A stretch of DNA of 64,000 nt from Oopsacas minuta (Eukaryota > Animalia > Porifera). A program made the position numbers and the translations under genes. Shown piece by piece: positions 1 through 44,133 of this stretch. The DNA lies in NCBI GenBank assembly GCA_024704765.1, contig JAKMXF010000312.1, forward strand, positions 62,001 to 126,000, read 5' to 3'. Numbering within the stretch: position 1 is the stretch's first letter; each line of letters starts with the position of its first letter. Below the pieces are notes generated by a model. It worked only from the letters and a program-made list of their open reading frames with translations, did not search any database and had not been told where the DNA came from.

Positions 1-3000
1 ACCACAGGCTCTCAGAACCTGTTCTGTCTGGTACGGTATGGGTCCCCGGGTAATCTCATGGGTCGCATGGTAGCAAGAGGTGTTGATGCTAATGAGTTTA
101 CTGTAGCTCTGAGTGAGGTGAGACAAAATGGGAGATTAGAGGACGGATATTCTGCTATGAATGTAAGTTATGTAAATAATAATAACAAGATTTGTTTACT
201 TGCTCTGTGCGGTCTGTATAACTATATTGTTAGAGTCTCAAATCTGATAGGACAATATTTTTAACACCTATCTCAGAGACTTTATGAGATATCGCTTAGA
301 TATTAGAACCTGTCACTATATTTATCACATACCACACTCATCCAAAATTTCAAGTCTCAGTTCCTCCGTTTAAAACAAATAATAACATACATACCAACAC
401 CTCTCTTCTGTATCTAGGTAGCAATTGAAGAATGTGGCATACGGACGGGTACAGCTCACATAATGATACTAGTGACAGATGAGGGTAGGAATATAGTAGA
501 CCAATCATTAAACAGAGTTAATATGGAACAGCTGTTAATTAGAAATTCCATTATACTTAATGTTGTTGTTAACACCCAGTTTGGTCTCAGAGGGTACTAT
601 AACGGTCCATTTGCTATTGGTATGAATTCTAGAGGCGATGGGTACTACGGGGACAACTCAGGGAACTGTCTGACTGTACCAAGCAGTATAATCAACTTCC
701 CAGGTATATTCATATTTTGTCACCTTCTGATAATATTTCTTACATCACATTCTATACACATACCAAATTACAATTCTCTATTTAACACTTCTAGGTGATA
801 ACAACACAAACGCAGCATATGTGGAGCTAGCACATGCAACTAACGGTGCTTCCTGGGATATTAATCAGCTGAGGAATGGAGGTGCTATCGCGCAATCATT
901 CAGTAATTGTCTTATTAAAGTTAAGATAGATGAAATTATTACTGTACTGGCCAGCTGTAGGGAATGTTTGTGTGTTGCTGGAGAGCTCAGATGTAGCGAG
1001 GTGAGTAGTAAACAATAACAAACAAACAAACAAACAAATAAATAACTAATATAAACTACAATGTATCCTCGTTAATACGACCACCAACACAAAGTCAAAT
1101 CTATTCGAATTAACACCAGTAATACCAATTGAATAACCATTGTAGGGGCCTGATTTATGAAATTATTGTTCCTTTTATCCGTAACACACACCCCTAGGGG
1201 CATTATTGCACCCTAGGGTATCAAATAACTGACTATTACGATAGAATTAATTATCCTTTCTTCTTATCCAATCATATTACGTACTTCTGTTATTGGTTCT
1301 AAGAATGTCCTTACTTGATTGGTTAATATTGGTGTTATTGGTGTCATATTATTAAGCATGTTATGAATTACAGGATAGCTTAATTCTATTAATTATTGTG
1401 ACACTAAAGGACACAATTAAATATTCATTATCATCAGCAACTTGTAATCTGATTGGTTGCAATTTTTATGCCACCTCCACAGGTTTAGTTGCATATTCTA
1501 ATTTGTGGTTAAATAAGCTCCGATTAGAACCAGCTGGTGTGAATACTTTAGCGTTGCTTGGATACACAATGCCTGCTGTAGAATGCATATTAACCTGCCT
1601 ATTGGTTAATACGCCTGCCTTAAATATGTAAAATCTTTTTATCTATATATTGAGGCTATTTCACACCTTTTATGGAAGTGTTTATTAACCAATTATATTT
1701 GAGGAAATTTTACTAATCATATTATCTAATATTATTAAATTCTTATAATTCCTAATACCCAAAGCGTTTCCATGAATAGCTCATATATTCTCTCTAATCT
1801 TATTGGTCCTTATTCTATATTAGATACAACTAGGACCAGGAGAGGAATGTGGGGTGACATTACCCATAGAGGATGAGTGCTGTGGGGCCTGTGACTGTAC
1901 CTCTGGTACCCTAACCTGTCCCTATTCCCGCACTAATCTGTGTAACAAGGATTGCAGGTGTGAATTGGAACCAGAATCAACCACATATATACAAGTCTGT
2001 GACACAATTGTAAAGGATTGTCCTCCTCGTTCTATTGGTTAGTTTATCACCTAATAAGGCTGGTAAATATTCATATGAATATACTGGAACTAAAATTCGC
2101 GGGGATATTATAACCAATGAGACTATACCCTTATTCTATTTATAGAACCTCAAGTCTGTGATGAAGATTACGGACAAGAAATACATCTATTACAAAATGT
2201 GACAGCTGTAGATCATGCCATATGTGGATCAACCGACACATTAATTGACACCTTAAGGTTTCCACCTGGTGTTACCAAGACCTACTGCATGTTAGAAACA
2301 CTCATACACTCTATAAATGATAATAGAAAGGTTAGTTAGGTGTTAAACATAACAACAACAAACAATAACAAGCATTTGTGTATTCAGGTAACATTTGTGA
2401 CCAGAGTTAAACAGGATCATGATACCATAGGGGACATATTATCTATCACTAACGCAGGAGGAGATGACACATATCTCCTGATTAGATTAAACCCCTTCAA
2501 CACTACTCTATCCTTCTCCTACAAAACAGCTGATTCTGTTAACACCTTGTATTTTTCACATACTCCACATGACTTTACTGATGAAGAGTGGCACACTCTA
2601 ATCCTAGTGGTGGAGTATGATAGTGTCGTTGTGTATATAGATTGTGTTTTGATTGGTCGAGAAGATATGCACCCTCCTCTGATATCAGAATTTACTGATT
2701 TTACTGATTATGGTCTCACTATAGGGAACTCTAGGGAACTGTCCTCTCAGCTGCTCTATGTAAGTTTTATGTGGTATTAAGTGGTATAATGAGTGTGTGT
2801 GTGTCTACTTGTTTACTTGTTTGTTTACTTGTTTACAGGGCTGTTTAGAGGATCCCTTTATCCTCCTTGACTTCACCCCAGAAGACATATCTTCTCTCCT
2901 CACAGATGTGTGTGGTACATCACCTGAGATCCCTGACAACGAAGTAAGTAATTGGTATGTAGTATATTATCTATAGTGCATTATCATATTTTAACACCTT

Positions 3001-6000
3001 TAGTGTCCAGCTGGCTGCACTAAGGACTGTCCTAAGTGTGAAGTACCAATTTGTTACCATAAAGGTAAGCCCTACACCTCCTCTATGACATGGCAGGGTA
3101 CAGATGAGGACGGTAAAGAGGACCCATGTATCCAATGCAGCTGTATCCAGAATACTAATGTAAGTACATAACACAGGTCTCTAATGGGGTGAGGGGAGTG
3201 TTACATATGTCCAGAATTGTCCCGATTAGTTCACTGGGAAAACAGGTTCCAGTTCCATTTCTATAAATTCATAATTCCTGTCAATCTGGAACCATGTCTC
3301 CCTATTTATCTCATACACAATTGTAATCACAAGTTCTATAGGTGTTTACAATAATTATATTATTTACCTAATCAGCTGATAGTCCAAACAAAATATTAAT
3401 TTCTGTCTCCTTTGGTTACACCTAGTTACCAACGTAAGCAATGGAATGTACATATATCTTACAACTTATTTGACATAATTAGTGACTGGAAAATACCTAG
3501 ACAATACATTCGTTGATTACGTTACCATGGTGATATCACAAAAATGTGCAATACTAATGGTTTGTTTATTACTGTCTTGTTATTTATCATTCCTATCTAC
3601 CAAGTGGGTTGCTAGGTTGAAGTTTAGGATAGTTGCATATTCGTGTATCACCATAGCAACCAAATACTAAGAATACTGATTGGTAATTATGTAAATACTT
3701 ATTGCCATTTTCTAATTTTAGACAAACTTATATGAGACACAATGTGTCACAACCATCTGTGACACACTTGATCCTTGCTACAAGTCAAAGAATGCCACAA
3801 TTTACAAACTGAGGGACCAATGTTGTCCAACCTGCATTCCAAGGAGTACAACTAGGACCCCTACTATGACCCTCACTGATTGGTCTGATTGGTCTGAGTG
3901 TAGTGTTACTTGTGGAGAAGGAGTACAAGATAGGAGGAGAACTTGTACCAATTTATTATATGGACCCATACCCCCTGAAGCACCAGGAGTCAGATACAAA
4001 TGTGATGGACTCAAATATCAAAGAGATTCTTGTTTCACACCTTGTCCAAGTAAGTAAACAGACTAGTAAACAAATATTGAATATAACATGATATTATTTG
4101 AGTTCTATTTTTAGTACACGGAGGGTGGAGTGACTGGCTTAATTGGGGCTCTTGTAGTGAAACATGTGGACTGGGTACCAGAGATAGGTCCAGGTTCTGT
4201 ACCGATCCTGCCCCCCAGCACGGAGGAGACGATTGTCTTGGTTTTTCTGGAGAGACAGAAGAATGTAACCTCGTGAATTGTCCAAGTAAGTGACAGTCTC
4301 AAAATATTTTTTATAAATAGAATATCCTACTCATATACTGGGTAAGCCCTCTAATCTGATAGGTCAAGACCAGGGCTTTATCTAGGTGTCATGAAGGACA
4401 CAATATCCCTACCATGAGACTCTAAATAGCACAGGATCAATATGTTACCATCCCAGAAAGCCTCTGTCCAAATTTGAGAGATATCGCTTAGATATTTGGA
4501 ATATTTGTGTAACATATCTGGATACATGTTTCCTACTCGATTTGTTGTTGGAATAATTTGATTTGTGTCGCTAATATGGCATACATTGGTGTTTGTACAG
4601 AATCCACTTAACTTAAGAGAATATCTGGTAGGTCAAAGGTTAGAGAAGTAAGGTTTCATATTTTGAAGAGTAACTGGATGTGACACTGTCATGCCACTTT
4701 AAAGGATAGAAGCCACTTTGTTCACATTTTAACGAAAGTTTTTCTTTCATAACACGCCTTAATTAGCTTAAGAATTCTCCAAACGAATATTTGCAACATT
4801 CATGGAGGAATGGAATGCATGAATAAATTTGTATAATATATTCCTTGTGAGGGTTGTTATTATTCAACCAATGAAATTTGTCTCTGTTCTGGCGCCTGTT
4901 TTACAGCTGTTCTTCTTTGGCCTCTTTTCTACTCAGCCAATCAAATGTCTTACTTTCCTCTTGGAGATAATGGCGCCTATCATCTTTAAGTGGATCTGGA
5001 ATCTATTGTTTGAGCCACGTGACAGAGATGCCATCTTATATCAATTTGTGCCACATTTGTGTTTTGTTTCCAATTCCTTCTGTTTGATACCTTGTACGTA
5101 AATATAGGATAATGTTGTAACATGGTTACCGATAACATCATTTGGAATTTGATTATTTGTATTATTATTTAGTTGACGGGGTATGGAGTGACTGGACTAC
5201 TTACTCTGATTGTTCCAGAACTTGTTCACAGGGTACCAGAACCAAAACCAGGTCATGTACTGGCCCATTTTACGGAGGAGATGACTGTGAGGGTGTCTCT
5301 ACGGACACTATTATATGTAACCTCAGAGCATGTCCAAGTAAGTTACTTGACAACCATCCTGGGTAATAGCTATTTCTATTTTTTTAAGTTTGTTTACTTA
5401 GCCACTGATTTTATTGGTTGCTATACTGCTGATACCATAAATGAGTATAGTTCCATATTAAACTAGAACTATAATATGAATAATTACTGTGTATGCAATT
5501 TATCCTTTCAGTACAGATAATTGTGCAATAGAGTAGGTAACATATCGCAGGTGTTAATAACTGGAACTATACTTAGATAGTTCCAGTTATATAATGAGGA
5601 TATTTGCATATTATATTTATGTTAACTTGTGTTTATTAGTTGACGGTGAGTGGTCTGAGTGGGACAGCTGGACATCATGCTCTCGTGATTGTGGCACAGG
5701 TAACTCTACCAGGAGGAGGACATGTTCACAACCTCGATACGGGGGTAGAGAGTGTGAAGGGGTGCGTACAGAGGAGAGGACATGTAACACCCATGAGTGC
5801 CCTAGTAAGTTATATTCATCTGTATATGTATCCTCTAATCTGATTGGTGGACACTCTTGTCATAATTAACTCAGAGATATGAGAATATTATTGTTACATA
5901 TTTTCACTCTTCTACAAACAAATAAACAAACAAACAAACAAACAAACAAACAAATAAACAAATAAACTATATTAATATTTGTATATCTACAGTACATGGC

Positions 6001-9000
6001 GGTTGGACAGATTGGTCTGATTTTACAGAATGCTCCAAGACCTGTTCAGAGGGTATACAGAAGAGAAATAGGTCTTGTACTGACCCTGAGCCACAATTCG
6101 GAGGTGACAATTGTGTCGGAGAGGATTTAGAGACATCCTCCTGTTTCTTGATCTTCTGTCCAAGTGAGTTACTACCCTCTAGAGGGTGACAACTAGTACC
6201 ATGTGTACCATGGATATTATGAATCTTTTCTGTAGTTGATGGTGGTTGGTCTGACTGGACAGGCTGGGGAGATTGTTCAGATGATTGTGGCGGTGGTATC
6301 AGGCAGAGGACAAGAGAGTGTAACAATCCTATCCCCCAGCATAGAGGTAGACGCTGTCCTGGGAGATCTACAAGGGTGTCAGAATGTAATGCACATCTCT
6401 GTCCAAGTAATTATACCTTCATAATCTAAACCAGTAATATTTTCAGATACGTACTAATATATTAATGTTCCATTAGCTCATGGTGCTTGGTCAGACTGGA
6501 CCCAGTGGACAGATTGCTCCCTCACCTGTGACCGAGGTTTCAGAGACAGGACCAGGGAGTGTGATAATCCTGCACCCCTTAACGGAGGTCTAGATTGTCC
6601 TAATTACAGTGAAGAAGTAGAGGAATGCAATACCCAAGAGTGTCCAGATGCCTGTAGGACCAATCCCTGTTTCCCTGGAGTAGAGTGTACCACTGATCCA
6701 GACCTTATGCATATAGCTAATTGTGGGAGCTGTCCCGAGGGTTACGATGGGTCTGGAATCACCTGTACAGATATTGATGAGGTTAGCGCCTATTTATATT
6801 ATTTGATAAATTAGAAATCAGTGGAACTTCAGTGTGGTCCCCGTTGTCACTTGTCCCATCACCTACCCTTACTGATCTCTATCCCCTAGTGTACAGAGGC
6901 TAATCCTTGCTACGGAGAATGTTACAATGGTGATGGTAACTTCGTTTGTGCTGAGTGTCCTCTGGGTTACGATGGTACCTCTCTGGAGGGTACAGGATTA
7001 GAATATGCTCATAGGAATAAACAAGTTAGTTAGAATATATGCATTCCTTCTCTCCTTACTGTTGTTATGATGTATACATGTAGGTATGTGATGATATAGA
7101 TGAGTGCTCCACTTCAACAGCCTGTGATGATCTCCAGGAATGTACCAACACCCCTGGAGGGTACATATGTGGACCCTGTCCAGATGGATATTTGGAACAG
7201 GAGGGTAATTGTATTCTAGTGGACCCGTGTGCTGCTGGACAAGCAGGTTGTAGTCCTAAGGCTTACTGTATCCCATCTAGTAGTGCTCACAGCTGTGTGG
7301 TGAGTATACAAAGAATAGTAAACAAAAATATATATACATTACTGATAAATACACAAACAAACAAACAAACAAACAAACAAACAAACAAACAAACAAACAA
7401 ACAAACAAACAAACAAACAGACATACATACATCCATACATTCAATCACTATCACAATCTTATTAAAATCACATTCCATAGTGTCAAATTGGTTACGAGGG
7501 TAACGGTTACGTCTGTAATAAGGATACAGATCTGGATGGTATACCAGATGAAAGATTAGATTATTGTTATACTACGAATAAAAGGTGTCAAGCTGATAAC
7601 TGTCCTGAAATACCCAACAGCGGACAGTTGGACACAGATGGGGATGGGAAAGGAGACAGATGCGACTTTGATGATGACAATGATAGTATTCCGGATTTAG
7701 AGGTTAGTTACATATTGTAACACCTTATAGTTCCATATTCAATTGTTTTGATATGTTTAATCAGGTCTTAACACATTCTGTAGGATAATTGTGATCTCAT
7801 AGCAAATATAAACCAACAGGACAGCGATCATGACTTCGTAGGAGACCTATGTGACAATTGTCCCCATCATTACAATGAACTCCAGGAGGATTACGACCAG
7901 GATGGGATAGGTGACGTATGTGACCCTGATATAGATGGTGACGGTGTTGTTAATGAGATTGATAACTGTGATAGAGTATTTAATCGAGAGCAGACTGATC
8001 AGGATAGAGATGGTGTAGGAGATATATGTGATAACTGTCCTAGGATAGCTAATCCTGAACAGGTAAAAGATAAACACACAAACAAACAAATAAATAACCA
8101 CAATAATCTGTAGACAAATTCAGATGAGGATGACTTAGGGGATGTCTGTGATTCTAATATAGACAATGATCGTGATGGAATAGATGACAGAGTAGACAAT
8201 TGTGTCGGTGTGACTAATCCGACACAATTGAACACTGATGCTAGTGGAGGAGGTGATGAGTGTGATGAGGACGATGATAACGACGGTATTATCGATGAGT
8301 GTCCTGAGTTCGTACAAAACTGTAGACCTGACAACTGTCCTAAAGTGTATAATCCTGATCAGAGAGATACAGATAGTAAGTTACATTTCTAGAATGATTG
8401 ACAAGGAGTTAACACCTTATATAGTGAGATGTCTTAATAACATAGACAATGGGACACACATTTGGTGATTAATCATATTTTCTCATATTTTTATGAAAAT
8501 TCAAAAGCACAATTCTTCAGGCAATAAGAACAAAAATATGAATATATGATTTCACACCTTGTGGGTACTGTTATAAGAACACCCTTAGGAGTAGCAGTAC
8601 ATGTTCTTATAACCAACATCCACTTTATAATATTTGAAACCTTCCAGGAGATGGAGTGGGTGACGCTTGTCAAGGCGACAAAGATGGAGATGGAATCACC
8701 GATGACATAGACGTATGTCCTCTGAATAATGAAATAGCTCATACAGACTTTAAGAATTTTCAAACTATTCGATTAGATCCTGGTCCAATAGATAGTTCTC
8801 AGAGTGACCCTGTATGGAGGATATTAGCTCAGGTATGTGATTGTAAACAAACAAACAAACAAACAAACAAACAAACAAACAAGCAAATAAACAAATATTT
8901 GTTTAGGGTAAAGAAATAACTCAAGATCTAAATTCAGATCCTGGATTACTTCTCGGTAAGTTAATTATAGAATTATTATTATTACACTCCTTATATGGTA

Positions 9001-9786
9001 ATCATGTATAATTGGCCCATTCTTACTAGGAATGGTTTGTAGAGGTTTATTTGTATATTATTGTTGTTTACTTATAGGAAATGATAGATTTGGTTGTGTA
9101 TATTTTGAAGGAACATTTTTTGTAAATACTGAGACAGATAATGATTATGCTGGATTTGTATTCTCATTCCAAAGTAACAGAAAATTCTATTTGGTAACCT
9201 GGAAGCAGGAGGGACAGCGCTACTGGGCTAATAATGGGTATGCGTATCCTGGATTAAGTATAAAGGTGAGTGTTGTGTAAACAAACAAACAAACAAACAA
9301 ATATCTACTCTATTCTCTTCTATAGCTTGTGGACTCAACAACAGGTCCCGGTCCAGAACTCAGGAATGCCATCTGGTCTTCACAAGACATCTTCTCACAG
9401 ACCCGTGTCCTCTGGAGAGATCGTAGCGGTACTCCTTGGGAGGATTTCAAATCGTATCGAGTAGAGATAACACATCTCCCTCAATGTGATTGTAGAATGA
9501 GGGTAGTAGTCCATGATAGTGAGGGAATTATTATTGATTCTGGGTGGATCAGGGACTGTACCCTACAAGGAGGGAAATTGGGGACATTTGTGTTCTCACA
9601 GGAAGCTGTTATCTGGTCCCAGCTCAATTACAAGTGTATTGGTGAGTTAATTGATAAACATCCAAACTAACAAACTAACTAACTAACTAACAAACTAACA
9701 AACAAACAAATAAACAAACAAACAAACTAACAGCTACTTCTATTCTATTTTTAGATTGTAACACCTGCCCTGAAGATCCGCGGTAA
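1..9786 (+). CDS. Thrombospondin-superfamily protein, 5'-partial: vWA-like, Cys-rich linker, LamG/TSP-N, vWC, 7x TSR, EGF repeats, type-3 Ca-binding repeats, C-terminal L-lectin domain
   Basis: Phase-consistent GT-AG exons: <1-162, 418-703, 795-1000, 1824-2037, 2146-2330, 2388-2759, 2839-2943, 3004-3159, 3722-4049, 4115-4285, 5173-5337, 5640-5804, 5993-6163, 6236-6406, 6477-6781, 6890-7024, 7084-7299, 7481-7702, 7784-8062, 8114-8375, 8648-8832, 8907-8955, 9078-9265, 9326-9641, 9755-9786 (TAA). Motifs: [12 protein letters not shown] (TSR), DNCP..N..Q.D.D.DG.GD.CD (type 3), [18 protein letters not shown] and FYLVTWKQ (TSP C-terminal domain). Confidence 0.92.
7354..7419 (+). repeat. (AAAC)n intronic microsatellite; similar runs at ~1019-1040, 5915-5965, 8843-8895, 9278-9300, 9661-9730, 44113-44165
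   Basis: Directly visible tetranucleotide runs, all inside introns. Confidence 0.95.
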
Positions 9787-10135
9787 TTGGCGCCTCAGCC
9801 ATCAATCCACTTATACACTGACACATTTGTTCATATATTCCCTAAACATTCATTAGTTCTGTTATTATTATTATAATTATCAAATAAATATTATTTACTA
9901 TTATTGTTGTGTATTGGTTGCTAGGTAACTAGCAGGTGTATGAATACACATTCCAACCGCATTTAAGCGTTACTATATATGCACACGTAGTGCTTATGTT
10001 TCACGTATATATGAACATAATTTCACACTTATGACTATACTAGCCGCAACTTTTTCTGCTAGACCCTGCGGAATGCTTTTTCGGCCCTCACGATTGTCTT
10101 TTGGAGTTTACGAACCCTCGAGTATTATATGAAGA

Positions 10136-28638: not shown

Positions 28639-31600
28639 ATGGATGCCACACAAGTGGCACTACTCAGACAGTTCGTTAAAGTGGTAACTGCCAAACCTGA
28701 GATCTTACAGCTACCTGAGATGGGATTCTTCAAAGAGTGGCTGCTGAAGTTAGGCGCCACAATCCCAGAACCAGAACCAGTACCGGAACCAACTAAAGAG
28801 GAACATATGGAGACCTCCTCACCCCCTAAGGGGCCGACTAAAATACCCACTCAAGAGTCTCCTAAAAAAGAAGAAGCAACTGTAAGCATTCCTTAGTTAC
28901 AATAATGGCATATAAGAATGTATATCATAAGGTTAAAAGGCTAGCAATTGATTGGTTAGGATCTGTAGTGTATATTCAATCAAGTAAACCCTCACACTTG
29001 ATTGGTCTAGTTGTTACTATTAATAGATTTCTCTACTTTTAGCCGCCAGTTGTTGAGAGCTCATCAGAGTATGAGGAGTCTCCTGAATCAGATCTGGATC
29101 TAGACATGACAGGTGTTGTAGAGGAGGATATTATTCAGAACCAAGAGATGGGGGACCATAATAAAGAGGTGAGGGATTAGTCAAGGGACCATGGATACTC
29201 AAGAGGTCATTTATCATAAATGGCGGACAGTTGTATCCAGTAACCTGATAGCTCGATGGGTGTATCTGCTGACACCTTTTATAAATATCATGGATACAAT
29301 TTGATGTAATTGGAATTTACGAAAAGTGACCCTCTTCATGATCCATAGTCCCATTAGAGCGTCCATTTTTCATGCGATCTGCACCCTTGTAACCAGAGCG
29401 ACAGATTTATTTACACCCAAATATCTCCAAGAAAGTAGCATTCCAATCGCTCAAAAGACTTTGGTTGTTTGTTTGTTTGTTTGCTTGTTCATTTGGTTAA
29501 TTGTTAGGTAAGTGAGGAGGACATGGAGAAGGCAACAGAGCTACGGTCAGACGCTATGTCCAGGGCATCAGATGGTGACATAGAGGGTGCAGTTGCCATC
29601 TTCACAGAGGCTATTAAACTGAACCCTAGCTCTGCTCTACTCTACTCTAAGAGAGCTAGTTTATACATCAAGCTGTCCAGACCTAATGCTGCTATCAAGG
29701 ACACCACCGAGGTAATTGTGTATTCTATTGAAATGTGTCACTTTAATTCGATTAGTTACCCTGCTACTTGAATGCTAGCCCCTCACTGAGGGTGTGCAAA
29801 TACCAACGAGGTAACCATGGAAACTGGGACATAACACGTCACAGAAGTACGTTAGGGAGTTGGTGAATATAATGCTATGATTCATGCTATGTAATATGTA
29901 ATTATTCAAAAGTTCAATCGCAATATTAAACAAATATTCGCAGAATAATATTTACACAAAATATCCTTTAGTTTAATATTATTAGTTCCTATTAATAGCA
30001 TTACATTATACTATATTATGGAACTAATTAATGTATAATTTCAATAGCATATATTGTGTAATGTTATACTAGTATTATCCAGTATTCGTCAGGATTTGTA
30101 AGCAAATTTAACAAATAATAACAAACAAATAATAACATTACTGAAGACGAACAAGAGAAATTATCCAACAACTTATCCTGTGGGTTCAGTTATTTGTTTT
30201 GTATTATTGGTACCATTTAGTATAATTGGGCCAATTCGGGACTACCTTGGCCCATTTTAACTCGATTATTGGATGTTTGTATGGTCCCATTTCTGGCCAG
30301 GTGGTCTGCATTCCTGGTGGCTGTATCATATGTCCTACTTGTGGATTTGACCACTTAACAAGACCCATAGGGTCAATTATTGAGAGGTAAGGTCCCAACA
30401 GTATCCGACTAGAGGTGACAATACACCATTTATGGAATTATCTGAAGGTTAGATACATATCATATATTTTAATAACAAATATTCTAATCATAGTTACGGT
30501 TACTCTCAGCATCATAAATAGTCTGATAACCACTTGTGCCATCAACACCTATGTTCTGTCTCATATAAGGGAAACAAGATAGAGAGGTTCTGAATCCGTC
30601 AAGAATTAATCTGGCCACACTTCTTAAGTGGTCCGTATGATTTATCAATTTTAGTCCTCTGACACTCTGCTTGTACTTACAAACTGTTGCTATGGAGTAG
30701 AGTATAAGGAATGTGGCTATTATTAGAACTATCACTCCAACTAGGATGTACCAATTGCCCCAAATGCCAGCTGTAATAATATAACACCCCTGTTTAGTGG
30801 TTAATTGCAATACCACATTGTTATTTTGCAATCCGTCGAATTTGAATTGTGTCGCTGTTTCGCCATGTTGACACTTTATATACAATTCTGAGTGTTTGGT
30901 AGGTTTTTCACCTTGAGGTGTGAATTGAAACTGTGCCATAATTGTGCCGTAATCCTCTGTATTTGGAACTATAAACTTGACAGATTTTTGAGTACCCATT
31001 GAGTAGCTACCACTGCCACTTGTGACACAAATAGCATTATCATCTGATTTCATACAACCAGGCAAATCGAAGGATTGTTTGCAAGGAAAATACGAAAAAT
31101 TTTTAGTGCCATTTTCCGCAGTGAATTGTAGTCCTTCTAGGTTGCTAAGGTCAACTGTACCTTTGGAATGCTGGCATTTACAACTCGATAGGCGTTTACA
31201 CTCTTCCTTACCGCCGTAAACACAAACAAATAATGCGTAAAGTAAAAAGAACTCAAAAACAAACATCGAAAATTCTCAGCCTATCAAATTCATGCTTTTC
31301 TACCTACAAACTCAATTCCTATGGCTTCTACTCGTAACTAAGCAACCACAAATATTTGACATACTACATGATCTTTGAATTTACCCTTTATTGTACACAA
31401 CATTATCTGACACTTCCAAACGGCTATAAATACCCAAAACTCACTAAATTTTATGCAAAAAACTTCATATATTATCACTATGAAAATATTCAGAATACTC
31501 GCATACCTATCTCTCCTCACCGTTGCTATAGCAAACAAAGAGGAATGCAAAAAAATAACGAATTGTAAATGCCAGCATTCCAAAGGCATTGTTGATCTGT

Positions 31601-32378
31601 CAAGCATTTCTTCACAAGTTTTCACTACTATAAAAGATCAGATTATGTACAGGTATTTCCCGTGTAACCAAACGGAGAGCATGACCGCTAGTTGTAGCAA
31701 ATCGGACGACAATGCTGTCTGTCAGTTGGACCAGAAAACTAACCTGGTGCTGGACTGGGGACAGGAGGACAGTGTCTCGTTTCTGGTACCAAACAGCCAG
31801 GATTATAGTGTCACCATCGCTAAATTTGTGTCGAAAGACAATGAGCGGAAGACGGAACTATATCTTGCTTGTCCTAAAGAAGGTAAAGAGCCAGAGGGTC
31901 TCGAAGTTTTGGAGGTACAGGGACGGAATGTAGAGCTACGTCTCACTTCAAAAGCTGCCTGTTTCACACCTAACACTCCGACCAAACCCACAACCAAACC
32001 AACCACCAAACCAACCACTAAACCTGCCATTAAACCTACTACCAAGCCACCCACCAAGCCACCTGGTAAACCCACTAAATCGCCTCCTCCAATTTTTCAG
32101 TTCGACATAACGAGATTGGGACACTGGTATGGTCTCGTTGGACTTATCACTTTGTTCCTTAGTCTATTCTTCTTATATTTTGTAATCAGATTTGTGAATA
32201 AGTACAGAGGAAAGGGAAAGACCTATGGACCATTAGAGGGATGTTCCTATCCCATAGGTCTGTTCATTGACGGATTTTTGTGTGTGTGTTCTTGTTTCCC
32301 GTTTTGTAGAAATGCGATTGGGAGACGGACGGTTGAGTACCATGCCCTTCGTGCTGAGGAAGAATATGTAAACGGTCA

Positions 32379-32415
<37 letters not shown>

Positions 32416-35400
32416 AGCTATAATTCTATTAATAGTCATTACCATTAGTGATGTTGATCTGTTGACAGTTATTGAGTAATTGCATTTATTTGTGTATTGT
32501 TTATTTTAATTTAATAATAATAATAGTTAGCATGTGGAATGTTTAAGGTTTTTTTCTTACAAATAAATTCACAAATAAGTAAACAAACAAACAAAACAAA
32601 CAAAACAACAAGTTCCCTCCATTTATACATAATAATATATCTTTGATTCAATTATCATTTTACTAAGAGCAAATAAATAATAATAAATAATAATAAACAA
32701 CACAACAACACAACAACAATCATATAACACTAGATAACTCACTCCTAAAAGGAGAATAACAAGAAAATACAAACAAAAATCCATCTTTAAACAAATAAGG
32801 TGTTTCTCTCCAAAAACTAACATTAGGAATTATTTCAACACCTCGTGCTCCTCTCACACATATTTGGCATAAAAACCCACCAATAAAATAGACCAATAGG
32901 AATGTACCCCCTAGGACAACTAATAGAATGAATAACACCGGTTCATTCTCAATGGTAAAATGTCGTAATTTGATTGGACAAGCGTTCTCAGTCACTAATC
33001 TGAATTTTAACTTTTTTTCATCATATGACAGAATTGAAAATGTGTCGCCCTGTCTCTCTATGCCACTTGTACAAATTGCCTCCACAGTCACAATTATATC
33101 TCTGTTTGTGTATATCACACTTGTTGTGAAATGTGTCGTATTTGATATTATATTGAATTCTACGTTTGTTTGTGTAGCAATTACATAATACTTCTCTACT
33201 TTTGTTATTGTCTCTTTGAGACATAAACTTGCTTTGCTATTCTTTGTACATACTTTAGTGTTCCAATCTGCTAAAATTGCGCAAGGATAATACCTATGAA
33301 GACAATAATAACAACAATAATGAGTGTGTAATTCACAGACAATTATTATTAATTCAATCAATTGATTCGTATACAAAATTGCAAAATAATTATTATTTCG
33401 AACTATTATAATAATTGCTATGGAATTGCCAATTAATTCCTAATATTATACCAATTATAATCCCGTGATTCTTGTCGTATTTTAGTGATGGAGTTTTCGA
33501 ATAATCTATTGCTCCTAGAACTTTGGGACGACGCGTACTGTTCGAAAAGATGTCAGCAATACAGAATTTCATATGGTAGTAATTTCCTAGCCCAATTAGA
33601 TTTGAGGGTTCACCCAGTACGTAATATAGGCTCACATTATATTCGTTCAAATAATTGTACAAATTACGTCATGGTTTGTTATGCCTATCTGAGAAACTGA
33701 TTGGTTTATAATATACTCTAAAATACAGAAAACAGAAGTCGACTGTATTTCTATAGAATTGTATTATCCATAGTCCAAAACATGAACTTACTTATATTCC
33801 AAATATGTTCCATTCATGTGATGATGCGCTATGAAATATTTTCCTCTCAGTTTTGATAGATCCACCTTCTCGCGAGATTTATAGACACAAGAACAGCTGT
33901 TAATTCGCCTACAAACCTCACTCAATACAGTTTGTATGCAAACTATAAATAGTATCAATGTTGTTATCTGCATCTATAAACATACAAGAATGTATCCAGC
34001 TGCAAAATGCAGTCAACTCCTGTTAGATGAAACACGGATATAGTGAAGTCTTAATTGTACAAATATGGTCACAAACCGTCAAAGTAACATATATCCCATC
34101 AGATATATTAAAGTGGGTATCAGGGCCCCTTTGATATAACAGGAGTTTACTGTAAATATTCGAGATTTTAAATATCTAATTAATATCTTAAAACACCTCT
34201 CAGAGAGGTGACGAATATCTAACCCAATCTAATTGCGATTTAATCGTCTTATTAAATATTTGGAAAAGCTATTCTAATCTTAAAATGTTACAAAAGTGTA
34301 TCTGTTGGTTACATCCAGGCTCAATTGGTTATTCCTCTTTTAAGAATAATTTACAATATCTTGTCATTACTATCCTATGTGTTCTACTTCCCCTGTCACG
34401 CATAGTATTACATATTTGTCCAGCTAATCAGTGGATTCAACCCTTTGATAATACAACTGATATATCTATATTTGACAAACACAAGACCCCAGCTTCCTAA
34501 TAGTTATGTTACATAAACTCATTCAAACGGTGCGTGGGTATCCCTATATAAATGTGAGGGAAAAATTGTTTGTGAGTTATTATCCAAGTTTAAATACACA
34601 AAAACACGTAAATTCAATACAGTTTTATTTTTTTGATATATGAAATGTTGATATTTTCACACCTTCAAGAGCCAATTCAAATCCTACTAATCCTATTCCT
34701 TGCTTATCTCATAACTTGGATTATTTGTCTTTTGATAACTATATTATTTGTGTGTACTTTAAGCGCCATATTAATTATCACCCTTTTAAGAGGCAGAGAA
34801 TATTCACATATATTAAGAGTACATAACACCTCGCTCCATTTCCTATTCCACATATGTCTTGTGCCTCTATACTCAATGCTTGGAGTGCCACTTGCAATAT
34901 TTTACGTCATTTTGGCTACAATTTTGAACTTTGGGTTGCTGTTTTGGACACTAACTTGGATGTTATACTCAAAGATATTGACACTATTCTTTGAGACAAA
35001 AACCAATATTGTATCTTACAAATCATTCGAACGTGCGAACTCAGCAAAATCAGATGAATGCTATCAATTGAAACAGCTGGTCTTAAAAAAACACATTTGA
35101 GGATTTTACACCTTTTGTATGCTATTTATACTTTGTTATTTGTTATGTCAAGTTATATATTAAACAGGAAATATAGGAATGTGTACCTTGAGTGTCTGTG
35201 GGATTGTAGGAACATGTGTGGTCCAAATAATCTACTGTTATTATCTAATCAAACCTCCCCCGAGCGGGTAAAATAGCTTTAGCGAATTCCTAGTCCCTTA
35301 CAGATGATCTTTCATAAACGCGGTAGTATTTTGGGCGTCCCTGACTGGCCTAGCTTATCCATGGTTCAGTAATGCAAGCAAATCGTGCGTATAGATAAAT

Positions 35401-38400
35401 CTGTGGAGGTAACACTGAATTTCTATCAGGTCATGATAGAAGCTTCGCTATTAATCTGTACGCACGATTTGCTTTGTATTACTGAACCATGGATAAGCTA
35501 GACATTATGTGAGCAATAATTCTTCTAATCGCATTAACAGATCGTATAGTAGTTTTGTTTACCTTTCTCAATAAACACAAACAACAAATTCACATATAAC
35601 TTGAATATTGTACGCACAATTCTCTGTTAGATATTTATACTATTCCCATCCACAATGTGAATCAACCAGCTGATAATCACGTGAATATTTGCATTGTTGA
35701 ATATATGAAATTTATAATAGGTGTAGGGAAGGCTATCTTCAAAATATATACCTGTCTTATTGTCATGAATATATGCATATGAGTACATTAAAGGGGCGAT
35801 TTGCACCTAGGGCAGGTGATTTACTGAGGATATAATCTTCACACCTTTTTCATCACGGTATTTCTCATATTTTTAGGAATTTGAAGTGGCATAATATGTG
35901 GCAGCCTGACACACACCATTCGGCCATAGCGACACCAAATTCTTACTGATACAATATAGTGTAGTATAGTTCTAAATATAGAACACGTGATAGGGTATTG
36001 AGTATCCATTAGGGACATATATATTGTTTGAGAGTGTATTAGCACACAAATGAATTATTTAGGAATAATACTAACAGTGTGCCTGCTTAACACTGTATTC
36101 ACTCAGGAGGTTAAAAAAGTGGGAGATTGTGTCTGGGCCACTTCTGACCTCACACTTGACCTGAGAGACTTTGGATTTTTGGAATACGATAACCCTTCAG
36201 GAGTAGCTACCTACAGGTATTACCCATGTACCATTAACGCTGATTGGGATCCTGATAACTGTGCTATTCGAAATAAACCCGCACTTTGCCAGGAGAACTA
36301 TGAGGCTGTGACATATATAGTCGGTAAGCAAGAAACTGCAAGTGTGAAAATAGTGTCGAAGGACACATTTGAATTAACATATACTGATGGTAATGATGGT
36401 AGAAAAGGAGTTGTCACTCTAAGTTGTTTCCAAAATTCAGATGAATTCAAGTTTGATTATGAGGAGTATCCTACTTATTTCTTTTCTATGAGTGTAGAGA
36501 ATGCTTGTAAGAGTGAGGGATACCCCGGGGGGTCTACAGGAGGAGATGATGGAGGGTTCGCGTTATTCATAATCCTAGTGCTCGCGTCTATCTTCGCCGT
36601 GACAACGTATATTGTAGGAGGAATGCTGTTTATGTATTTGCATAAGAAAGAGAGAGGAATTGGATTAATACCAAATCTAGCTTTCTGGAAAGATTCCCCA
36701 TTTCTATTCAGAGACGGATTCTTGTTTACTTTCTCATTTATCCCGCAGGTCAGAGAGTACATGAAGGATCACATTAAAGAGGATTACTCCAAAGTACCCA
36801 GTTAATATTGTTTGTATTTACTTGTTGTTTGTATTGTTATTATTAGAGTAGTAATTACATGTTGTACATATATTTCACTTTGAAACGGTCAAGGTTGCAA
36901 TGCTCTCCTTTGATTTGAGACATACAAAGTCTTAATGACTTCCTCCATATCTATAAATAACCAGAAGGCATATTTTAACACCTCCCTTAATTAATCATAT
37001 GACAGAAATTCTAAGAAAATAGCACATTTTCTACTGAATTAATAACTAAGAATAGAAGTATAGTTCTATAATATAGAACACGTGATAGGGTATTGAGTAT
37101 CCATTAGGGACATATATATTGTATGAGAGTGTATTAGCACACAAATGAATTATTTTGGAATAATACTAACAGTGTGTCTGCTTAACACTGTATTCACTCA
37201 GGAGGTTAAAAAAGTGGGAGATTGTGTCTGGGCCACTTCTGACCTCACACTTGACCTGAGAGGAATTGATTTCGTACAGGACTTCGATGACAATAACCCA
37301 GCCACCTACAGGTATTATCCTTGCAAGATAGAGTCGAATTGGGATGATACAGAGTGTACTGTCAGTAAGCAGACAGCTCTCTGCCAGGAGTATCATGGAA
37401 GTAAATATCTAATTGGGAGACTAAATCAAGTTAGCGTTAAGTTAATTAAGGAAAATACTTTTGAGTTAAAGTATAGCGGAGGTAGCAAGAGTCGAACCGG
37501 AACAGTAACGTTAACCTGCTTCCAGAATTCGGACAGTTTTGCGTTCGTTCGAGAAGAAAGTGACCCTTTTAGATATTACTTCAGTATGAGCGTGAGTACT
37601 GCTTGCAAAAATGGAGTGCCCGGGGGGTCTACAGGAGGGGATGATGGAGGATTCGCGTTATTCATAATCCTAGTGCTCGTGTCTATCTTCGCCGTGACAA
37701 CGTATATTGTAGGAGGAATGCTGTTTATGTATTTGCATAAGAAAGAGAGAGGAATTGGATTAATACCAAATCTAGCTTTCTGGAAAGATTCCCCATTTCT
37801 ATTCAGAGACGGATTCCTGTTTACTTTCTCATTTATCCCGCAGGTCAGAGAGTACATGAAGGATCACATTAAAGAGGGTTACTCCAAAGTACCCAGTTAA
37901 TATAGTTTGTATTTACTTGTTGTTTGTATTATTATTATTATAGTAATAGTTTTACTGTTAAATGCGACAAATACCAATACCATTGTGCCTTCAAGGAGTC
38001 CCTGAGGTCTGACTGGGCATATATGTTGCTCACCATGGCACGAGCACTCAGGTCTCCTTTCATAACTTAATAATAATAAATAATGTTATAATAATGACAA
38101 TACAAACAAACAAGTAAATACAAACAATATTAACTGGGTACTTTGGAGTAATCTTCTTTGATGTGATCCTTCATGTACTCTCTGACCTGCGGGATAAATG
38201 AGAAAGTAAACAAGAATCCGTCTCTGAATAGAAATGGGGAATCTTTCCAGAAAGCTAGATTTGGTATTAATCCAATTCCTCTCTCTTTCTTATGCAAATA
38301 CATAAACAGCATTCCTCCTACAATATACGTTGTCACGGCGAAGATAGACGCGAGCACTAGGATTATGAACAACACGAATCCTCCATCATCCCCTCCTGTA

Positions 38401-41400
38401 GACCCCCCGGGCACTCCATTTTTGCAAGCAGTACTCACGCTCATACTGAAGTAATAATTAATAGGGTAATTTTCTTCTCGAACGAACGCAAAACTGTCCG
38501 AATTCTGGAAGCAGGTTAACGTTACTGTTCCGGTTCGACTGTTGCTACCTCCGCTGTAAATCAACTCAAAAGTATTTTCCTTGATCAAGTTAACGCTAAC
38601 TTGATTTAGTCTACCAATTAGATAATTACTTCCCCCATACTCCTGGCAGAGAGCTGTCTGCTTACTGACAGTACACTCTGTATCATCCCAATTCGACTCT
38701 ATCTTGCAAGGATAATACCTGTAGGTGGCTGGGTTATTGTCATCGAAGTCCTGTACGAAATCAATTCCTCTCAGGTCAAGTGTGAGGTCAGAAGTGGCCC
38801 AGACACAATCTCCCACTTTTTTAACCTCCTGAGTGAATACAGTGTTAAGCAGACACACTGTTAGTATTATTCCAAAATAATTCATTTGTGTGCTAATACA
38901 CTCTCATACAATATATATGTCCCTAATGGATACTCAATACCCTATCTTGTGTTCTATATTTAGAACTATACTTCTATTCTTAGTTATTAATTCAGTAGAA
39001 AATGTGCTATTTTCTTAGAATTTCTGTCATATGATTAATTAAGGGAGGTGTTAAAATATGCCTTCTGGTTATTTATAGATATGGAGGAAGTCATTAAGAC
39101 TTTGTATGTCTCAAATCCAAGGGTCTATCAAAGGAGAGCATTGCAACCTTGACCGTTTCAAAGTGAAATATATGTACAACAATTACTTAGTACTTTAATA
39201 ATGACAATACAAACAAACAAGTAAATACAAACAATATTAACTGGGTACTTTGGAGTAATCTTCTTTGATGTGATCCTTCATGTACTCTCTGACCTGCGGG
39301 ATAAATGAGAAAGTAAACAAGAATCCGTCTCTGAATAGAAATGGGGAATCTTTCCAGAAAGCTAGATTTGGTATTAATCCAATTCCTCTCTCTTTCTTAT
39401 GCAAATACATAAACAGCATTCCTCCTACAATATACGTTGTCACGGCGAAGATAGACGCGAGCACTAGGATTATGAATAACGCGAACCCTCCATCATCCCC
39501 TCCTGTAGACCCCCCGGGGATTCCCCCACTCTTACAAGCATTCTCTACACTCATAGAAAAGAAGTAAGTAGGATAGACCTCATAATCAAACTTGAATTCA
39601 TCTGAATTTTGGAAACAACTTAGAGTCACCTTCCCCTCTCTACCCGAAAAGCCTCCCTCGTAAGACAACTCAAAAGTGTCCTTTGTGAGTGACTTAACGC
39701 TTACTGTGTTGAGCTTACCTACAATGTAAATGGACCCGTCTTGGTGGTTTTTCTGGCAGAGTGCCGGCTTGTTATCAGCGGTACAACCATATTGACTCCA
39801 ATCAGAGTTTATCTTACAGGGATAATATCTGTATGTAGCTTGGCTAAAATCATCGTCGTATTCTAAAAATCCAAAGTCTCTCAGGTCAAGTGTGAGGTCA
39901 GAAGTGGCCCAGACACAATCTCCCACTTTTTTAACCTCCTGAGTGAATACAGTGTTAAGCAGACACACTGTTAGTATTATTCCAAAATAATTCATTTGTG
40001 TCCTAATACACTTTCATACAATATATATGTCCCTAATGGATACTCAATACCCTATCACGTGTTCTATATTTAGAACTATACTACACTATTCCATGATTTG
40101 GATTATCTTAACATTATTTTGAGAATTGAATGACTATAATCTCCGTGGTGAACATTTCTAATCCAAGAATATGTGTGGAGATATTCTAATGCTTAATTCT
40201 TGTATATATATTAATTTTACTAATAACAAGTAAACAAACAAACAACAAATAATAAGGGTATCAAACTTAGATACCATCTGGTAAATTATTATAATTCCTT
40301 GCGGCTGTCTGTCTGGTATTCTCCAACCCTCCCATAAGTTTTACATGCAGTCTTAACACTCATGCTAAAATGATATATTGGAAATACTTCATAATCAAAG
40401 TAGAATACGTCATCATCTTGGAAGCATGTAATGGTGACTATCCCTTTTCTATTATTATTTCCTCCAAAGTACATCAATTCGAAAGTGTACGGTTTCACTA
40501 AGGTGACAACCAGCTGACTTTGATTACCAATTAAGTGAGTAGGACCTTGATACTTCTGACAGAGAGCAGGGTTGTTTCCGATCGTGCATACACTCGGGTC
40601 CCAATTAGAGTACACTTTGCAAGGATAATACCTGAAAGTTCCTGGGTTGTTATGATTGAAATATTCGAAAAAATACAAATCTGTCAGGTCAAGTGTGAGG
40701 TCAGAAGTGGCCCAGACACAATCTCTCACTTTTTTAACCTCCTGAGTGAATACAGTGTTAAGCAGACACACTGTTAGTATTATTCCAAAATAATTCATTT
40801 GTGTGCTAATACACTCTCAAACAATATATATGTCCCTAATGGATACTCAATACCCTATCACGTGTTCTATATTTAGAACTATACCATCACGACTTTAGTA
40901 TTGCACTATACCCAAATGGCCTTCTTTACAATCACAGCTTATTAAATCAACAGAATTCTAAATACCATTTGCCTCGTAGCGAAACTAAGCAACAAACCGC
41001 AAAGATGTTATTTAAGTTGTTAGAAACCAAACGTGTGCAAGTGTGGTGGGAGGTGTTAAATAGTGGCATGCCGGTCATACAGTTGAATTGCCCTAGGCCA
41101 AAGTGGTCAGGACATGGTCTGACTTATCTAACCATGTGTGTCACTCTGATGTCACATGGCTGTAACACAATCCACATCAGAGTATGCTTCAGTTAATATA
41201 TATAAACTCAAATTACAGAAGAAAAGTTACAATTCAAATGTATTGTATTATTCTTATACTAATTCTTGTCCCCCTAGCCAATGGTGCTAATTATAACTGC
41301 TCCTCTCAGACCCCGTGTTCCTGTAACCTCAAGGGAGTGGGGAATATGAACCTAACAGGTGTTAAGTTCCATAACAACCAAACATACGTAGAATCATTTG

Positions 41401-44133
41401 GATTTGATGGGTTCAGGTATAGATATTATCCTTGTGGTGCTGGTGGTCCATGGGGTAACGGAGACTGTAAGAAAGGGGACACAACCTGCCAGTACACTGG
41501 AGACGAGGGGTACTTCTCTCTGGGAACAGCTGTTAGATATGTTATATCACAGGCAGTGAGTGATAAACACATGCCATATGTTAGTTTTAGTTACTATGGT
41601 GGAACTAAGGGAAGGGCATCAACTGTGGAAATTATTTGTGACCCAGCGAGTTCTGTTGATAAATTGCAATTTATGGGTGAATATCCCACGCATGCGTATA
41701 ACTTCAAGTTAAATACAGTTAAGTTTTGCCCCAATATATCACCTCTATTCTGACGCAGTTTGTAAAGTATTTTGTTGTTGTTGTTGATATTATAAATTAA
41801 CTAAAATACACATATGATTACAATATATTTATAAACTAATATTTAGCTGGGCATTTTCTCATAATCTTCTTCAATTGTTTTCTTCAAATATTTTCTAACA
41901 AAAGGTATACAAGAAAATACAAACAAAAAACCATCAAAAAATAGGAACGGTGCTATTATCCAGAAACCGATATTCGGGATCAGTCCCAATCTTCGTTCTC
42001 CTTTGCATGCCATAATTCCAACACCAATGCCTAAGTATAGTATCAATCCAACTGGTAGCGTCACCATGAGAACAATGAATAATATATTACCTATTGGGGC
42101 GTCGGGTTGTTTATACAAACAAGCTTTAGGTGTCATAAATACAAAATTGTAGTTTATTATAGGACTCTCTGAGATGAATTTCAACTCATGAGACCCTCTA
42201 ATATCACACATAACTCTAACGGTAGCATTCCTTCTTCCATTAATAAAATCTGAGGTCCCATCTTGGAATAGAAAATCGAAATATGTATTGTCCCCCTTGG
42301 CAACAGCTCTAGTTATCTCGTAACTATTAGACTTACCGAGGACGTAATATTCACCGTCCCTGGTTTGTTGGCAGACAGCTGGGTGGTTTTCGATGGTACA
42401 AACTCCACCCCAATCAGCTTTAACCCCGCATGGATAATATCTATACGTGTAGACCCCTGATGTGATCTCTATATAGTCCAATCCACCTCCGCTACCCGCC
42501 AGATTCAATAGCCCAGCTGATTTAAGATTACATGTACACGCGGATTCCAATGTACAGTTTTCGTTGCTAGCGTATGATTGTGCAGCTATTAATAGTAACA
42601 CAATGATTTGAAAAATACCAAACATTTAAATATTCGATTAGACTGTATTGGACTATTTATTAGGTTTTTTGGTATATTAAATTTCAAATCTATTTTAATA
42701 TTATCTCATCGAATAGATTATTATTCTAATTATACTCATTTAGTTCCAATTGGAACCTATTTTGTATATGTTGATTGAGGAAATCGTAATACGTAGTGTA
42801 ACCTCCACAGACATGGTGTCAGGTACTCCGAAATTGCTACCCTGTTCCTCCTTTATGGAGGTTCATTTTCATGGGACTAGGGATTCGCTTTATTTATCAC
42901 CTCGTTTCCAGTAATTTAACACCTTTTGTTTGGTTCTGTTTCTGGTCAAGTGACCAGATTAACTGGTGTCTGTAATATACGGAGTATCCGGTACGTATTT
43001 CTGATACCGTTATATATTCGTATAATTACTCTGTCTATGAGCTGTTAATATCATTTGATATATTGCCTAACCTTATTAGGTGTCACATGGCTGTAACACA
43101 ATCCACATCAGAGTATGCTTCAGTTAATATATAAACTGGAATTACAGAAGAATAGTTATAATTCAAATGTATTGTATTATTCTTATGCTAATTCTTGTCC
43201 CCCTAGCCAATAGTGCTAATGTCAACTGTTCCACTGAAACGGCGTGTTCCTGTGACCTTAAGGGGGTTGGGATCATGAGCTTACACGGGAAGAGATTCAA
43301 CAAAGAAAGTTACGTTGAGACATTGGGAAGTGACAAGAACACGTATAGATATTACCCTTGTGGTGTTGATAAAAATTGGGAGGGTGGCTGTACAACAGCT
43401 TCTACAATATGTCAGTATAGTGCGGCTGACGGATTGTATCACTCAATAGGGGAAACGAATACCTTTCAGGTGATAGAAGCAGTTGGCGATGGCGACAAAC
43501 CTTATATTAAATTCATGTACACGGGGGGAACAGATGATCGTGAATCCAATGTAAAAATTATTTGTGAACCCAAGAGTACTCAAGATACGCTAGTGTTCTT
43601 AGGCGAGTTTACTACTAAGACATATGATATAGAAATGACTACTGCTAAAATATGTCCGAATGCTAACCCAACACCTTCAGGTGGTGGTGGTGGTCCTGAC
43701 ATCCCAGCTCTGTTTATTTTAGTCCTATTAGTTCTATTTTTAGCCACAATCACGTATATAGTTGTTGGCGTGTTGTTGATGGTATTTTGGAAAGGGGCAA
43801 GAGGTCTTGAAGTGATTCCAAATCTGTCTTTTTGGAAAGATTTCCCATTTTTGTTTAAAGATGGAGTCTTGTTTTCATTTGCATACATTCCTGCTGCTCG
43901 ATCTCGTATCGGGGGAGAGAAGAGTTATTCACAACTCAAGTGATTGTTTGTTTACTTGTTTGTTTACATTTTATTAGCTTTTATTTTGTATATATTTTTG
44001 TTTATCATTATCATTAATAAATAAGTTATCTGATATCCCCGGGGTGTATGAATCCATAGTCTTATACCTGAAGCTATCAAAACAAGCACTATTTATCTAA
44101 TAATATATTCTACAAACAAACAAACAAACAAAC

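Follow-up and report, generated by a model that had tools for sequence, protein, structure and literature searches.

A cluster of MRH-domain receptor genes in Oopsacas minuta

We analysed a stretch of 64,000 nucleotides from the hexactinellid sponge Oopsacas minuta (contig JAKMXF010000312.1, positions 62,001 to 126,000; hereafter the window), which carries at 30.4-44 kb a cluster of 11 mostly intronless open reading frames (ORFs) with an architecture consisting of a signal peptide, a single lumenal domain of the MRH type, a membrane span and a short tail. The analysis centred on five of these genes. Copies A (36050..36805, + strand) and B (37145..37900, +) are followed by their mirror partners, B' (38130..38885, -) and A' (39237..39995, -), and then by copy E (40289..40798, -). 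The ORFs of A, B and B' encode 251 amino acids and that of A' 252; the product of A reads as signal peptide, MRH domain, stalk, membrane span and tail. Copy E, with 169 amino acids, comprises the signal peptide and the MRH core without the stalk, membrane span and tail. The stretch downstream of its stop codon is T/G-rich, like the 3' untranslated region (3'UTR) of the family, which suggests an internal deletion in E.

Copies A, B, B' and A' form a 4-kb palindrome. Its left arm (35975..37920) contains A, an intergenic stretch and B, and aligns to the reverse complement of the right arm (38110..40070, read from 40070 to 38110), which contains B', an intergenic stretch and A'; the spacer lies at ~37921-38109. 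Identity between the arms, with the intergenic DNA counted in, was 94-100%, but it fell to 60-66% in a block of 250 bp with sharp limits inside A and A'. This divergent core block lies at 36185..36431 (+) in A and at 39611-39860 (-) in its mirror partner. Short-read contigs from four runs, all of one sample, covered every divergent core as well as the palindrome centre (37957-38118) at 100% identity, indicating that the pattern is not an assembly artefact.

Constant ends and saturated cores

DNA alignment showed near-identity of all five copies over ~85 bp before the ATG and over codons 1-39, and of four of them from the PGGSTGG motif through the stop codon and ~45 bp of the 3'UTR. A first-pass annotation of the window had already noticed both constant ends, placing the limit of the first one at about codon 38, and the alignments bore this out. 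The 5' constant module of A, comprising the promoter and codons 1-39, spans 35965..36166 (+), with equivalents at 37060-37261 (+), 38769-38970 (-), 39879-40080 (-) and 40682-40883 (-). The 3' constant module of A (36527..36850, +) includes the stalk from PGGSTGG, the membrane span, a tail with FW and YSKV motifs and the start of the 3'UTR, and its equivalents lie at ~37619-37945 (+), 38085-38411 (-) and 39192-39518 (-). Between these modules, the MRH core (residues ~40-160) differed by ~40% at the DNA level between copies. A maximum chi-square scan set the limits of the divergent block between A and A' at residues 47-123, with a nucleotide divergence of 40% inside and 2.3% outside, in agreement with the heavy differences over residues ~48-125 described by the first-pass annotation. 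For A and B the block covered residues 40-159, with 44% divergence inside as compared with 1.8% outside.

The contrast between ends and core was far above chance at fourfold-degenerate sites, 0-2 of 58 of which differed in the ends, while 10-16 of 17-25 differed in the core (Fisher p 1e-6 to 1e-10). Synonymous divergence (dS, Nei-Gojobori method, NG86) was 0.03-0.085 in the end modules, the same range being obtained for the 3' constant module of the four copies, and the proportion of synonymous differences (pS) was 0-0.08. In the core, pS reached 0.63 for A/A' (0.79 within the 47-123 block) and 0.79-0.88 for A/B, A/E and B/E, that is, saturation; copy E has the promoter and codons 1-39 in common with the other copies and is then saturated against all of them. 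The youngest pair was B and B', whose cores showed a dS of 0.083 and a non-synonymous divergence (dN) of 0.045. Core dN was 0.22-0.44, with dN/dS of ~0.16 where it could be computed (0.16 for A/A'), and the proportion of non-synonymous differences (pN) between window cores, 0.20-0.34, was about like that between orthologs of different genera (0.33-0.40).

Since the silent sites of the core are saturated and the ends are near-identical, the odd feature of these genes is the youth of the ends and not the variability of the middle. The cores of A, A', B and E are old paralogous cores that have been mainly under purifying selection, and 'hypervariable', as the first-pass annotation had called the core, is the wrong word for sequences with saturated silent sites and a dN/dS of ~0.14-0.16.

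Evidence for gene conversion at the ends of the genes

The identity of the ends extended to the promoter, the fourfold sites, the 3'UTR and the intergenic sequence of the arms, and thus goes beyond what purifying selection on the protein can explain. The N-terminal module is not slow-evolving either: between species it was as divergent as the core (pN 0.31-0.48, pS 0.63-0.72), yet both values were at most 0.04 among the five window copies. The edges of the homogenised regions were sharp, both in the maximum chi-square blocks and in a 50-bp identity profile.

The segments also had discordant histories. Among informative sites of the core, 93 grouped the copies by type (A with A', B with B') and 3 by arm, whereas in the 3' module 5 sites, including an indel in the 3'UTR, grouped them by arm (A with B, A' with B') and 1 by type (Fisher 4e-6). 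This conflict indicates that tandem neighbours swapped their 3' ends after the arms had separated. A Sawyer-type test for concordant runs of polymorphic sites gave no information on the shared ends, where such sites are almost lacking, and picked up noise from 15 non-homologous upstream bases; it was replaced by the Fisher test on fourfold sites, the maximum chi-square scan and the partition counts.

To these observations we added syntenic clusters from four other hexactinellid assemblies (two ENA samples, one of them represented by contigs L001 and L003; Vazella pourtalesii; L006; L007), so that the tandem receptor genes are syntenic across at least five hexactinellid assemblies. The pS of the module comprising the membrane span and tail was 0.02-0.13 within species, in five species, as compared with 0.66-0.94 between species, and homogenisation of the tail module was seen in every species with at least two copies. 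Core pS within the five species was 0.13-0.85. The 5' module was homogenised in the window, in L001/L003 and between L7a and L7b, but not between L6a and L6b or in L7c. As expected under concerted evolution, paralogs within a species were therefore closer to each other at silent sites than orthologs of different species, and the segments were discordant. Taken together, silent and noncoding identity, sharp breakpoints, discordant segment histories and recurrence strongly support conversion of the ends, as the first-pass annotation had proposed for the frame of these genes, and indicate that it is general across hexactinellids.

A first tree of the cores placed A' with the relatives (95/98), hinting that the cores predate speciation, although the approximately unbiased (AU) test did not reject monophyly of the window copies (p=0.35). 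After five sequences had been added, the five window copies formed one clade (94/96), and the idea that whole cores are trans-specific was dropped. On the simplest reading, the duplications are old and confined to the Oopsacas lineage. In B and B', the Cys60-Cys80 loop (window 37322-37390, B residues 60-81) was identical at 23/27 residues to that of L6b (L006 2886-3653), with a pS of 0.64, while other cross-type pairs shared 9-18 residues. This likeness could reflect an ancient loop type or convergence, and we regard it as a lead.

Copy number varied in one relative, for which the contigs L003 (12x) and L001 (256x) came from one ENA sample. On L003, an additional full-length copy (4388-5137) separates the orthologue from an ORF with four transmembrane segments, and the truncated copy of this contig carries the segment of residues 49-72 of the full-length copy, suggesting that conversion can enter the core while cores are still similar. 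The truncated copies of this relative (L001 8241-8717, L003 1570-2046) arose independently of those in the window.

Family, fold and sugar pocket

Four of the five copies scored above the Pfam thresholds, with 47-56 bits for ATG27 (cut-off 27) and 33-39 bits for Man-6-P_recep; the corresponding values were 3e-13 and 5e-8 for copy A and 8.5e-15 and 7.5e-10 for copy B. When copy A alone was compared with PDB sequences, nothing relevant was returned, and a family profile was required. The profile, built from 113 homologues, matched CI-MPR at 1e-169 and CD-MPR at 2e-9, and on CI-MPR it scored highest at the carbohydrate-binding repeats 3, 5 and 15, followed by repeat 9.

In the MRH family, a conserved set of Gln, Arg, Glu and Tyr holds the mannose, and additional glycan contacts lie two to eight residues after the Gln (PMC9388126). 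The corresponding columns of the profile fell on positions 392, 435, 460 and 465 of the bovine CI-MPR precursor, which are Q348, R391, E416 and Y421 of domain 3. These residues (Q81, R119, E139 and Y144 in A') were found in all five copies, A and E included, and in the genes at 41843 and 43167, confirming that the sugar pocket is retained, as had been noted from the translations. The paralog at 30484-31266 (-) has lost all four pocket residues, its columns reading V, K, L and V, and is unlikely, judging from these substitutions, to bind mannose in the usual way.

Six cysteines, C27, C60, C71, C80, C127 and C154, were invariant or nearly so in the 113 homologues and present in all five copies, including E, so that by their positions in the sequence the cysteines for the three disulfides of MRH receptors are in place. 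An AlphaFold2 model of A' had a predicted local distance difference test (pLDDT) score of 89, with 95-98 in the lumenal domain, and its predicted fold is the flattened beta-barrel of MRH domains, matching CD-MPR: the best Foldseek matches were the CD-MPR structures 3k41, 2rl8, 1c39 and 1m6p (E ~1e-7, TM 0.57-0.60), followed by CI-MPR repeats, OS-9 and GNPTG. A type I topology was apparent from the hydrophobic N-terminus, a helix at 168-198 in the model and a Man-6-P_recep match that runs through the span into the tail. We regard the five genes as paralogs, specific to the Oopsacas lineage, of a CD-MPR-related lectin receptor of the type I membrane class.

The tail carries 'AFW' and a near-terminal 'YSKV', which we take to resemble the Phe-Trp and YxxPhi signals of the CD-MPR tail, and no DxxLL was present at the C-terminus. 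The loop before the pocket Arg differed in each copy (TDGNDG, EGGFSG, SGGSKS, SGGSNS and FGGNNN). In MPRs the loop before the Arg carries phosphate contacts, and in MPRs and GNPTG the loops before the Arg and after the Gln contact the phosphate or the next sugar. Because these loops differ among the copies, the copies may bind different glycans.

Selection on the MRH cores

Site models (M0, M1a and M2a) were run with our own codon-model code. For the five window copies, M0 gave an omega of 0.14 and M1a placed 78% of the sites at an omega of 0.09, the rest being neutral. M2a was not significantly better than M1a in this set (p=0.063), and its fit, with an omega of 131 and a tree length of 45, was degenerate in the manner typical of saturation. 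The comparison was likewise not significant in all 14 sequences (p=0.28) or in the nine relatives (p=0.51). The variable sites lay in loops, both in those adjacent to the pocket (A' 49-52, 82-89, 113-118 and 140-143) and elsewhere (61-76, 101-105 and 130-133).

In their lumenal parts, B and B' differed at H84G, K87N, K99N, K109I, K115N, S139N, D140Y, F142I and R143N. At five of these nine sites a Lys or Arg of B stands opposite an Asn or Ile of B', and the lumenal net charge was -3 in B and -7 in B'. When A, A' and E were used as outgroups, most of the changes could not be polarised unambiguously, and we do not claim B as the derived copy. When a donor of the loop-D variant of B' was sought in the window, only B' itself matched.

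Transcription, promoter and neighbouring genes

The contigs of short-read run X2 had depths of 1000-10000 over the genes (~240 over E), as compared with 1.5-30 over intergenic DNA. The record gives no library type; we inferred RNA from this depth contrast, the TruSeq adapters and the RNA-seq of the genome paper, which suggests that all five copies are transcribed.

At ~60-85 bp upstream of the ATG, the inverted repeat GTTCTA-N5-TAGAAC abuts a downstream E-box, CACGTGA (window 35965-36000 for A, with equivalents upstream of B, B', A' and E). The same element was found at ~9930-9960 of L001 and in L002 and L004, and was thus kept in four species with saturated silent sites. Variants of the E-box were CACAAG in B' and CACTTG in the L002 copy. 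Downstream of it, ~35 bp before the ATG, there is a TATA-like run.

Next to the five copies, a small multi-pass membrane ORF of ~150 amino acids with no Pfam match (34633-35100, +) has counterparts at L001 11178-11630, L002 11298-11768, L006 4891-5316 and L007 15414-15857. It adjoins the corresponding copies in all species examined and serves as a conserved synteny anchor. In the cluster member at 31453-32448 (+), a Pro/Thr/Lys-rich stalk of repeated KPTT units joins the MRH domain to the membrane span and the tail contains ~13 Asn in a row, both features being present also in its L001 and L002 orthologs. Like E, the member at 41184-41753 (+) is missing the stalk, membrane span and tail. The GenBank protein KAI6650271.1 (LOD99_5950, Oopsacas minuta, 251 aa) corresponds to the window ORF 32720-33376 (-) plus an upstream exon, indicating that at least one cluster member has an intron and that the ORF list understates the N-terminus of this gene. 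The Oopsacas genome paper makes no mention of mannose, lectin or these receptor genes, and literature searches found no description of the Oopsacas cluster.

Discussion

The results above document the mosaic with its saturated cores, the discordant segment histories, the occurrence of the pattern in further species, the fold and the pocket residues. The pattern is probably best explained by concerted evolution restricted to modules, in which conversion homogenises the ends of the genes and leaves between them old, mostly conserved MRH cores. The promoter, the signal peptide and the first beta-hairpin would have been repeatedly overwritten between neighbours by non-allelic gene conversion, and so would the stalk, the membrane span, the sorting tail and the 3'UTR, including by exchange between the arms of the palindrome. 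Because the ends are repeatedly converted, these modules would evolve in concert and look constant, while the MRH core would escape conversion and keep its old divergence. Within the core, selection would be mainly purifying and preserve the framework of the beta-barrel, the six cysteines and the mannose pocket with its Gln, Arg, Glu and Tyr, with about one-fifth of the sites, mostly in loops, near-neutral. The conversion tracts may stop at the core either because a divergence of ~40% blocks heteroduplex formation or because homogenised cores have been selected against. The copies would then bind different mannose-type glycans and yet share a trafficking itinerary through an identical tail with FW and YxxPhi signals.

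The first-pass annotation had proposed, instead, that diversifying selection drove the cores apart at the loops flanking the pocket, as in immune receptors, while conversion homogenised the rest. We consider this unlikely, although several results do weigh against mainly purifying selection and in favour of such a process. The clustering of the replacements between B and B' around the pocket, to which the first-pass annotation had drawn attention, is real: six of the nine are no more than 3 residues away from Q81, R117, E138 or Y145 (binomial P=0.0013), ~10 of the 13 non-synonymous changes in the core fall in the four pocket loops (Fisher 3e-6), and the pocket-loop pN of this pair, 0.18, exceeds its gene-wide pS of 0.059 (p=0.011). 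When the young and roughly independent pairs B/B', L3f/L3g, L1t/L3t and L2t/L2f were pooled, pN/pS was highest in pocket loops (1.68), lower in the remaining loops (0.92) and lowest in strands (0.25), and in the relatives alone the pN of pocket loops was twice that of other loops (p=0.015). For the five young copies of one relative (species 1), M0 gave an omega of 0.99 and M2a was preferred over M1a (p=0.008), with 9% of sites at an omega of 5.7; sites at A' positions 49, 65, 68 and 85 were singled out. Divergent cores, moreover, persist beside converted ends in five species, and in the cores of A, A', B and E the saturated silent sites make it almost impossible to detect positive selection of the past, so that purifying selection describes the average of these cores and not the whole story. 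Against this, M2a was not significant in the window copies, in the 14 sequences or in the nine relatives, and the value of 1.68 for pocket loops was not significantly greater than 1 (P=0.12). Eight other paralog pairs, among them A/A' (P=0.37) and L4f/L4g (P=0.96), showed no significant clustering near the four pocket residues, and both the loop classes and the tests on B and B' were defined post hoc, after the data had been seen. The copies of species 1 exchange core segments, L3t for example carrying the 49-72 segment of the L3f type, and conversion among such young copies violates the single-tree model and inflates the M2a result. In any beta-barrel, in addition, it is the loops that are least constrained, and neutral drift yields the same map. 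The data thus give no support for diversifying selection in the old cores and no more than a hint of it in the youngest pair.

A recent duplication of whole genes, followed by cassette-like replacement of the cores through conversion from diverged donors elsewhere, would account for the sharp edges of the A/A' block within arms that are otherwise 94-100% identical, and the intergenic identity does show that duplication or conversion of the arms was recent. It is nevertheless very improbable, since a protein database search matched only the contig of the window itself and no near-copy donor, the other six cluster members are far more distant, and no other part of the window has the loop-D variant of B'. 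Assembly is notoriously error-prone at palindromes and near-identical repeats, and mis-assembled haplotypes or a false palindrome might in principle give such a mosaic; a local process of hypermutation targeted to the core could in principle raise synonymous change. We give hardly any credence to either. The 100% match of independent short-read contigs to each core and to the palindrome centre, a core difference of 40%, far above allelic divergence, and the same architecture in four other assemblies from other pipelines argue against an artefact, while the conservation of framework residues, the low omega at 78% of the sites and the lack of an evident mutation signature argue against hypermutation. 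Module-restricted concerted evolution therefore remains the reading that we prefer.

Among known proteins, the sponge receptors are most similar to CD-MPR (1m6p, 1c39, 2rl8, 3k41), a P-type lectin that is likewise a type I membrane protein of ~250 amino acids with a single MRH beta-barrel, and whose structures gave the best matches to the model; the six cysteines and the Gln/Arg/Glu/Tyr pocket are present in the sponge proteins, and a 13-residue segment of the sponge tail may resemble the part of the CD-MPR tail with the Phe-Trp sorting signal. They differ from it in that the sequence identity is only ~20%, the C-terminal acidic-cluster dileucine is missing, loop D (Glu to Tyr) is much shorter, the loop before the Arg is different in each copy, and there are 11 tandem genes as opposed to one, including anchorless forms and one member without the four pocket residues. 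The pocket columns align exactly to domain 3 of CI-MPR/IGF2R (6um1, 1q25, 1syo), which has, however, fifteen domains where the sponge proteins have one each, their diversity arising by gene duplication and not by repeats within a chain. The fungal membrane protein Atg27 (PF09451), which is MRH-like and carries a YxxPhi motif at its C-terminus, gave the best Pfam score and has the same architecture, and the sponge tail also ends in a tyrosine motif and not a dileucine, but the structure and profile matches favour the MPRs; a role in autophagy is not known to us outside fungi.

Domain-restricted concerted evolution occurs in other tandem receptor families, such as primate SIGLEC11/16, KIR/LILR, RHD/RHCE and the opsins, where, as here, one part is homogenised among neighbours and another is paralog-specific, with sharp breakpoints and discordant segment trees. 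In the sponge, by contrast, it is the ligand-binding core of a P-type lectin that escapes, and the promoter and signal peptide and the span and tail that are homogenised. Animals usually have one CD-MPR and one CI-MPR. Another invertebrate with more genes of the mannose 6-phosphate receptor family than usual is the tubeworm Paraescarpia echinospica, in which the expansion was discussed with lysosomal and symbiont handling; the sections of that report available to us describe no mosaic structure or conversion (PMC8476170).

Intronless genes, a palindrome of 4 kb and the contrast of saturated cores with identical ends make the locus a clean and compact case of module-restricted concerted evolution, well suited to asking what brings conversion tracts to a halt. 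It also holds a lesson of method: constant ends around a variable middle were mistaken for hypervariability, while the silent-site divergence shows the reverse.

For the sponge, the most likely outcome, judging from the sequences, would be several CD-MPR-like receptors that have their promoter and trafficking tail in common and that each conserve a distinct binding domain. It is conceivable, though rather doubtful, that the P-type lectin, as a rule a single housekeeping receptor for lysosomal sorting, has in glass sponges been turned into a small receptor repertoire, sharing its promoter and tail through conversion and with its pocket loops kept apart by selection. If so, the youngest pair would show adaptation in progress, with five more Lys or Arg in the pocket area of B than in that of B', and part of the loop diversity, as in the Cys60-Cys80 loop of B and L6b, would predate speciation. 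With intact pockets and differing loops, the 11 tandem CD-MPR-like genes would represent a natural experiment in the diversification of P-type lectin specificity.

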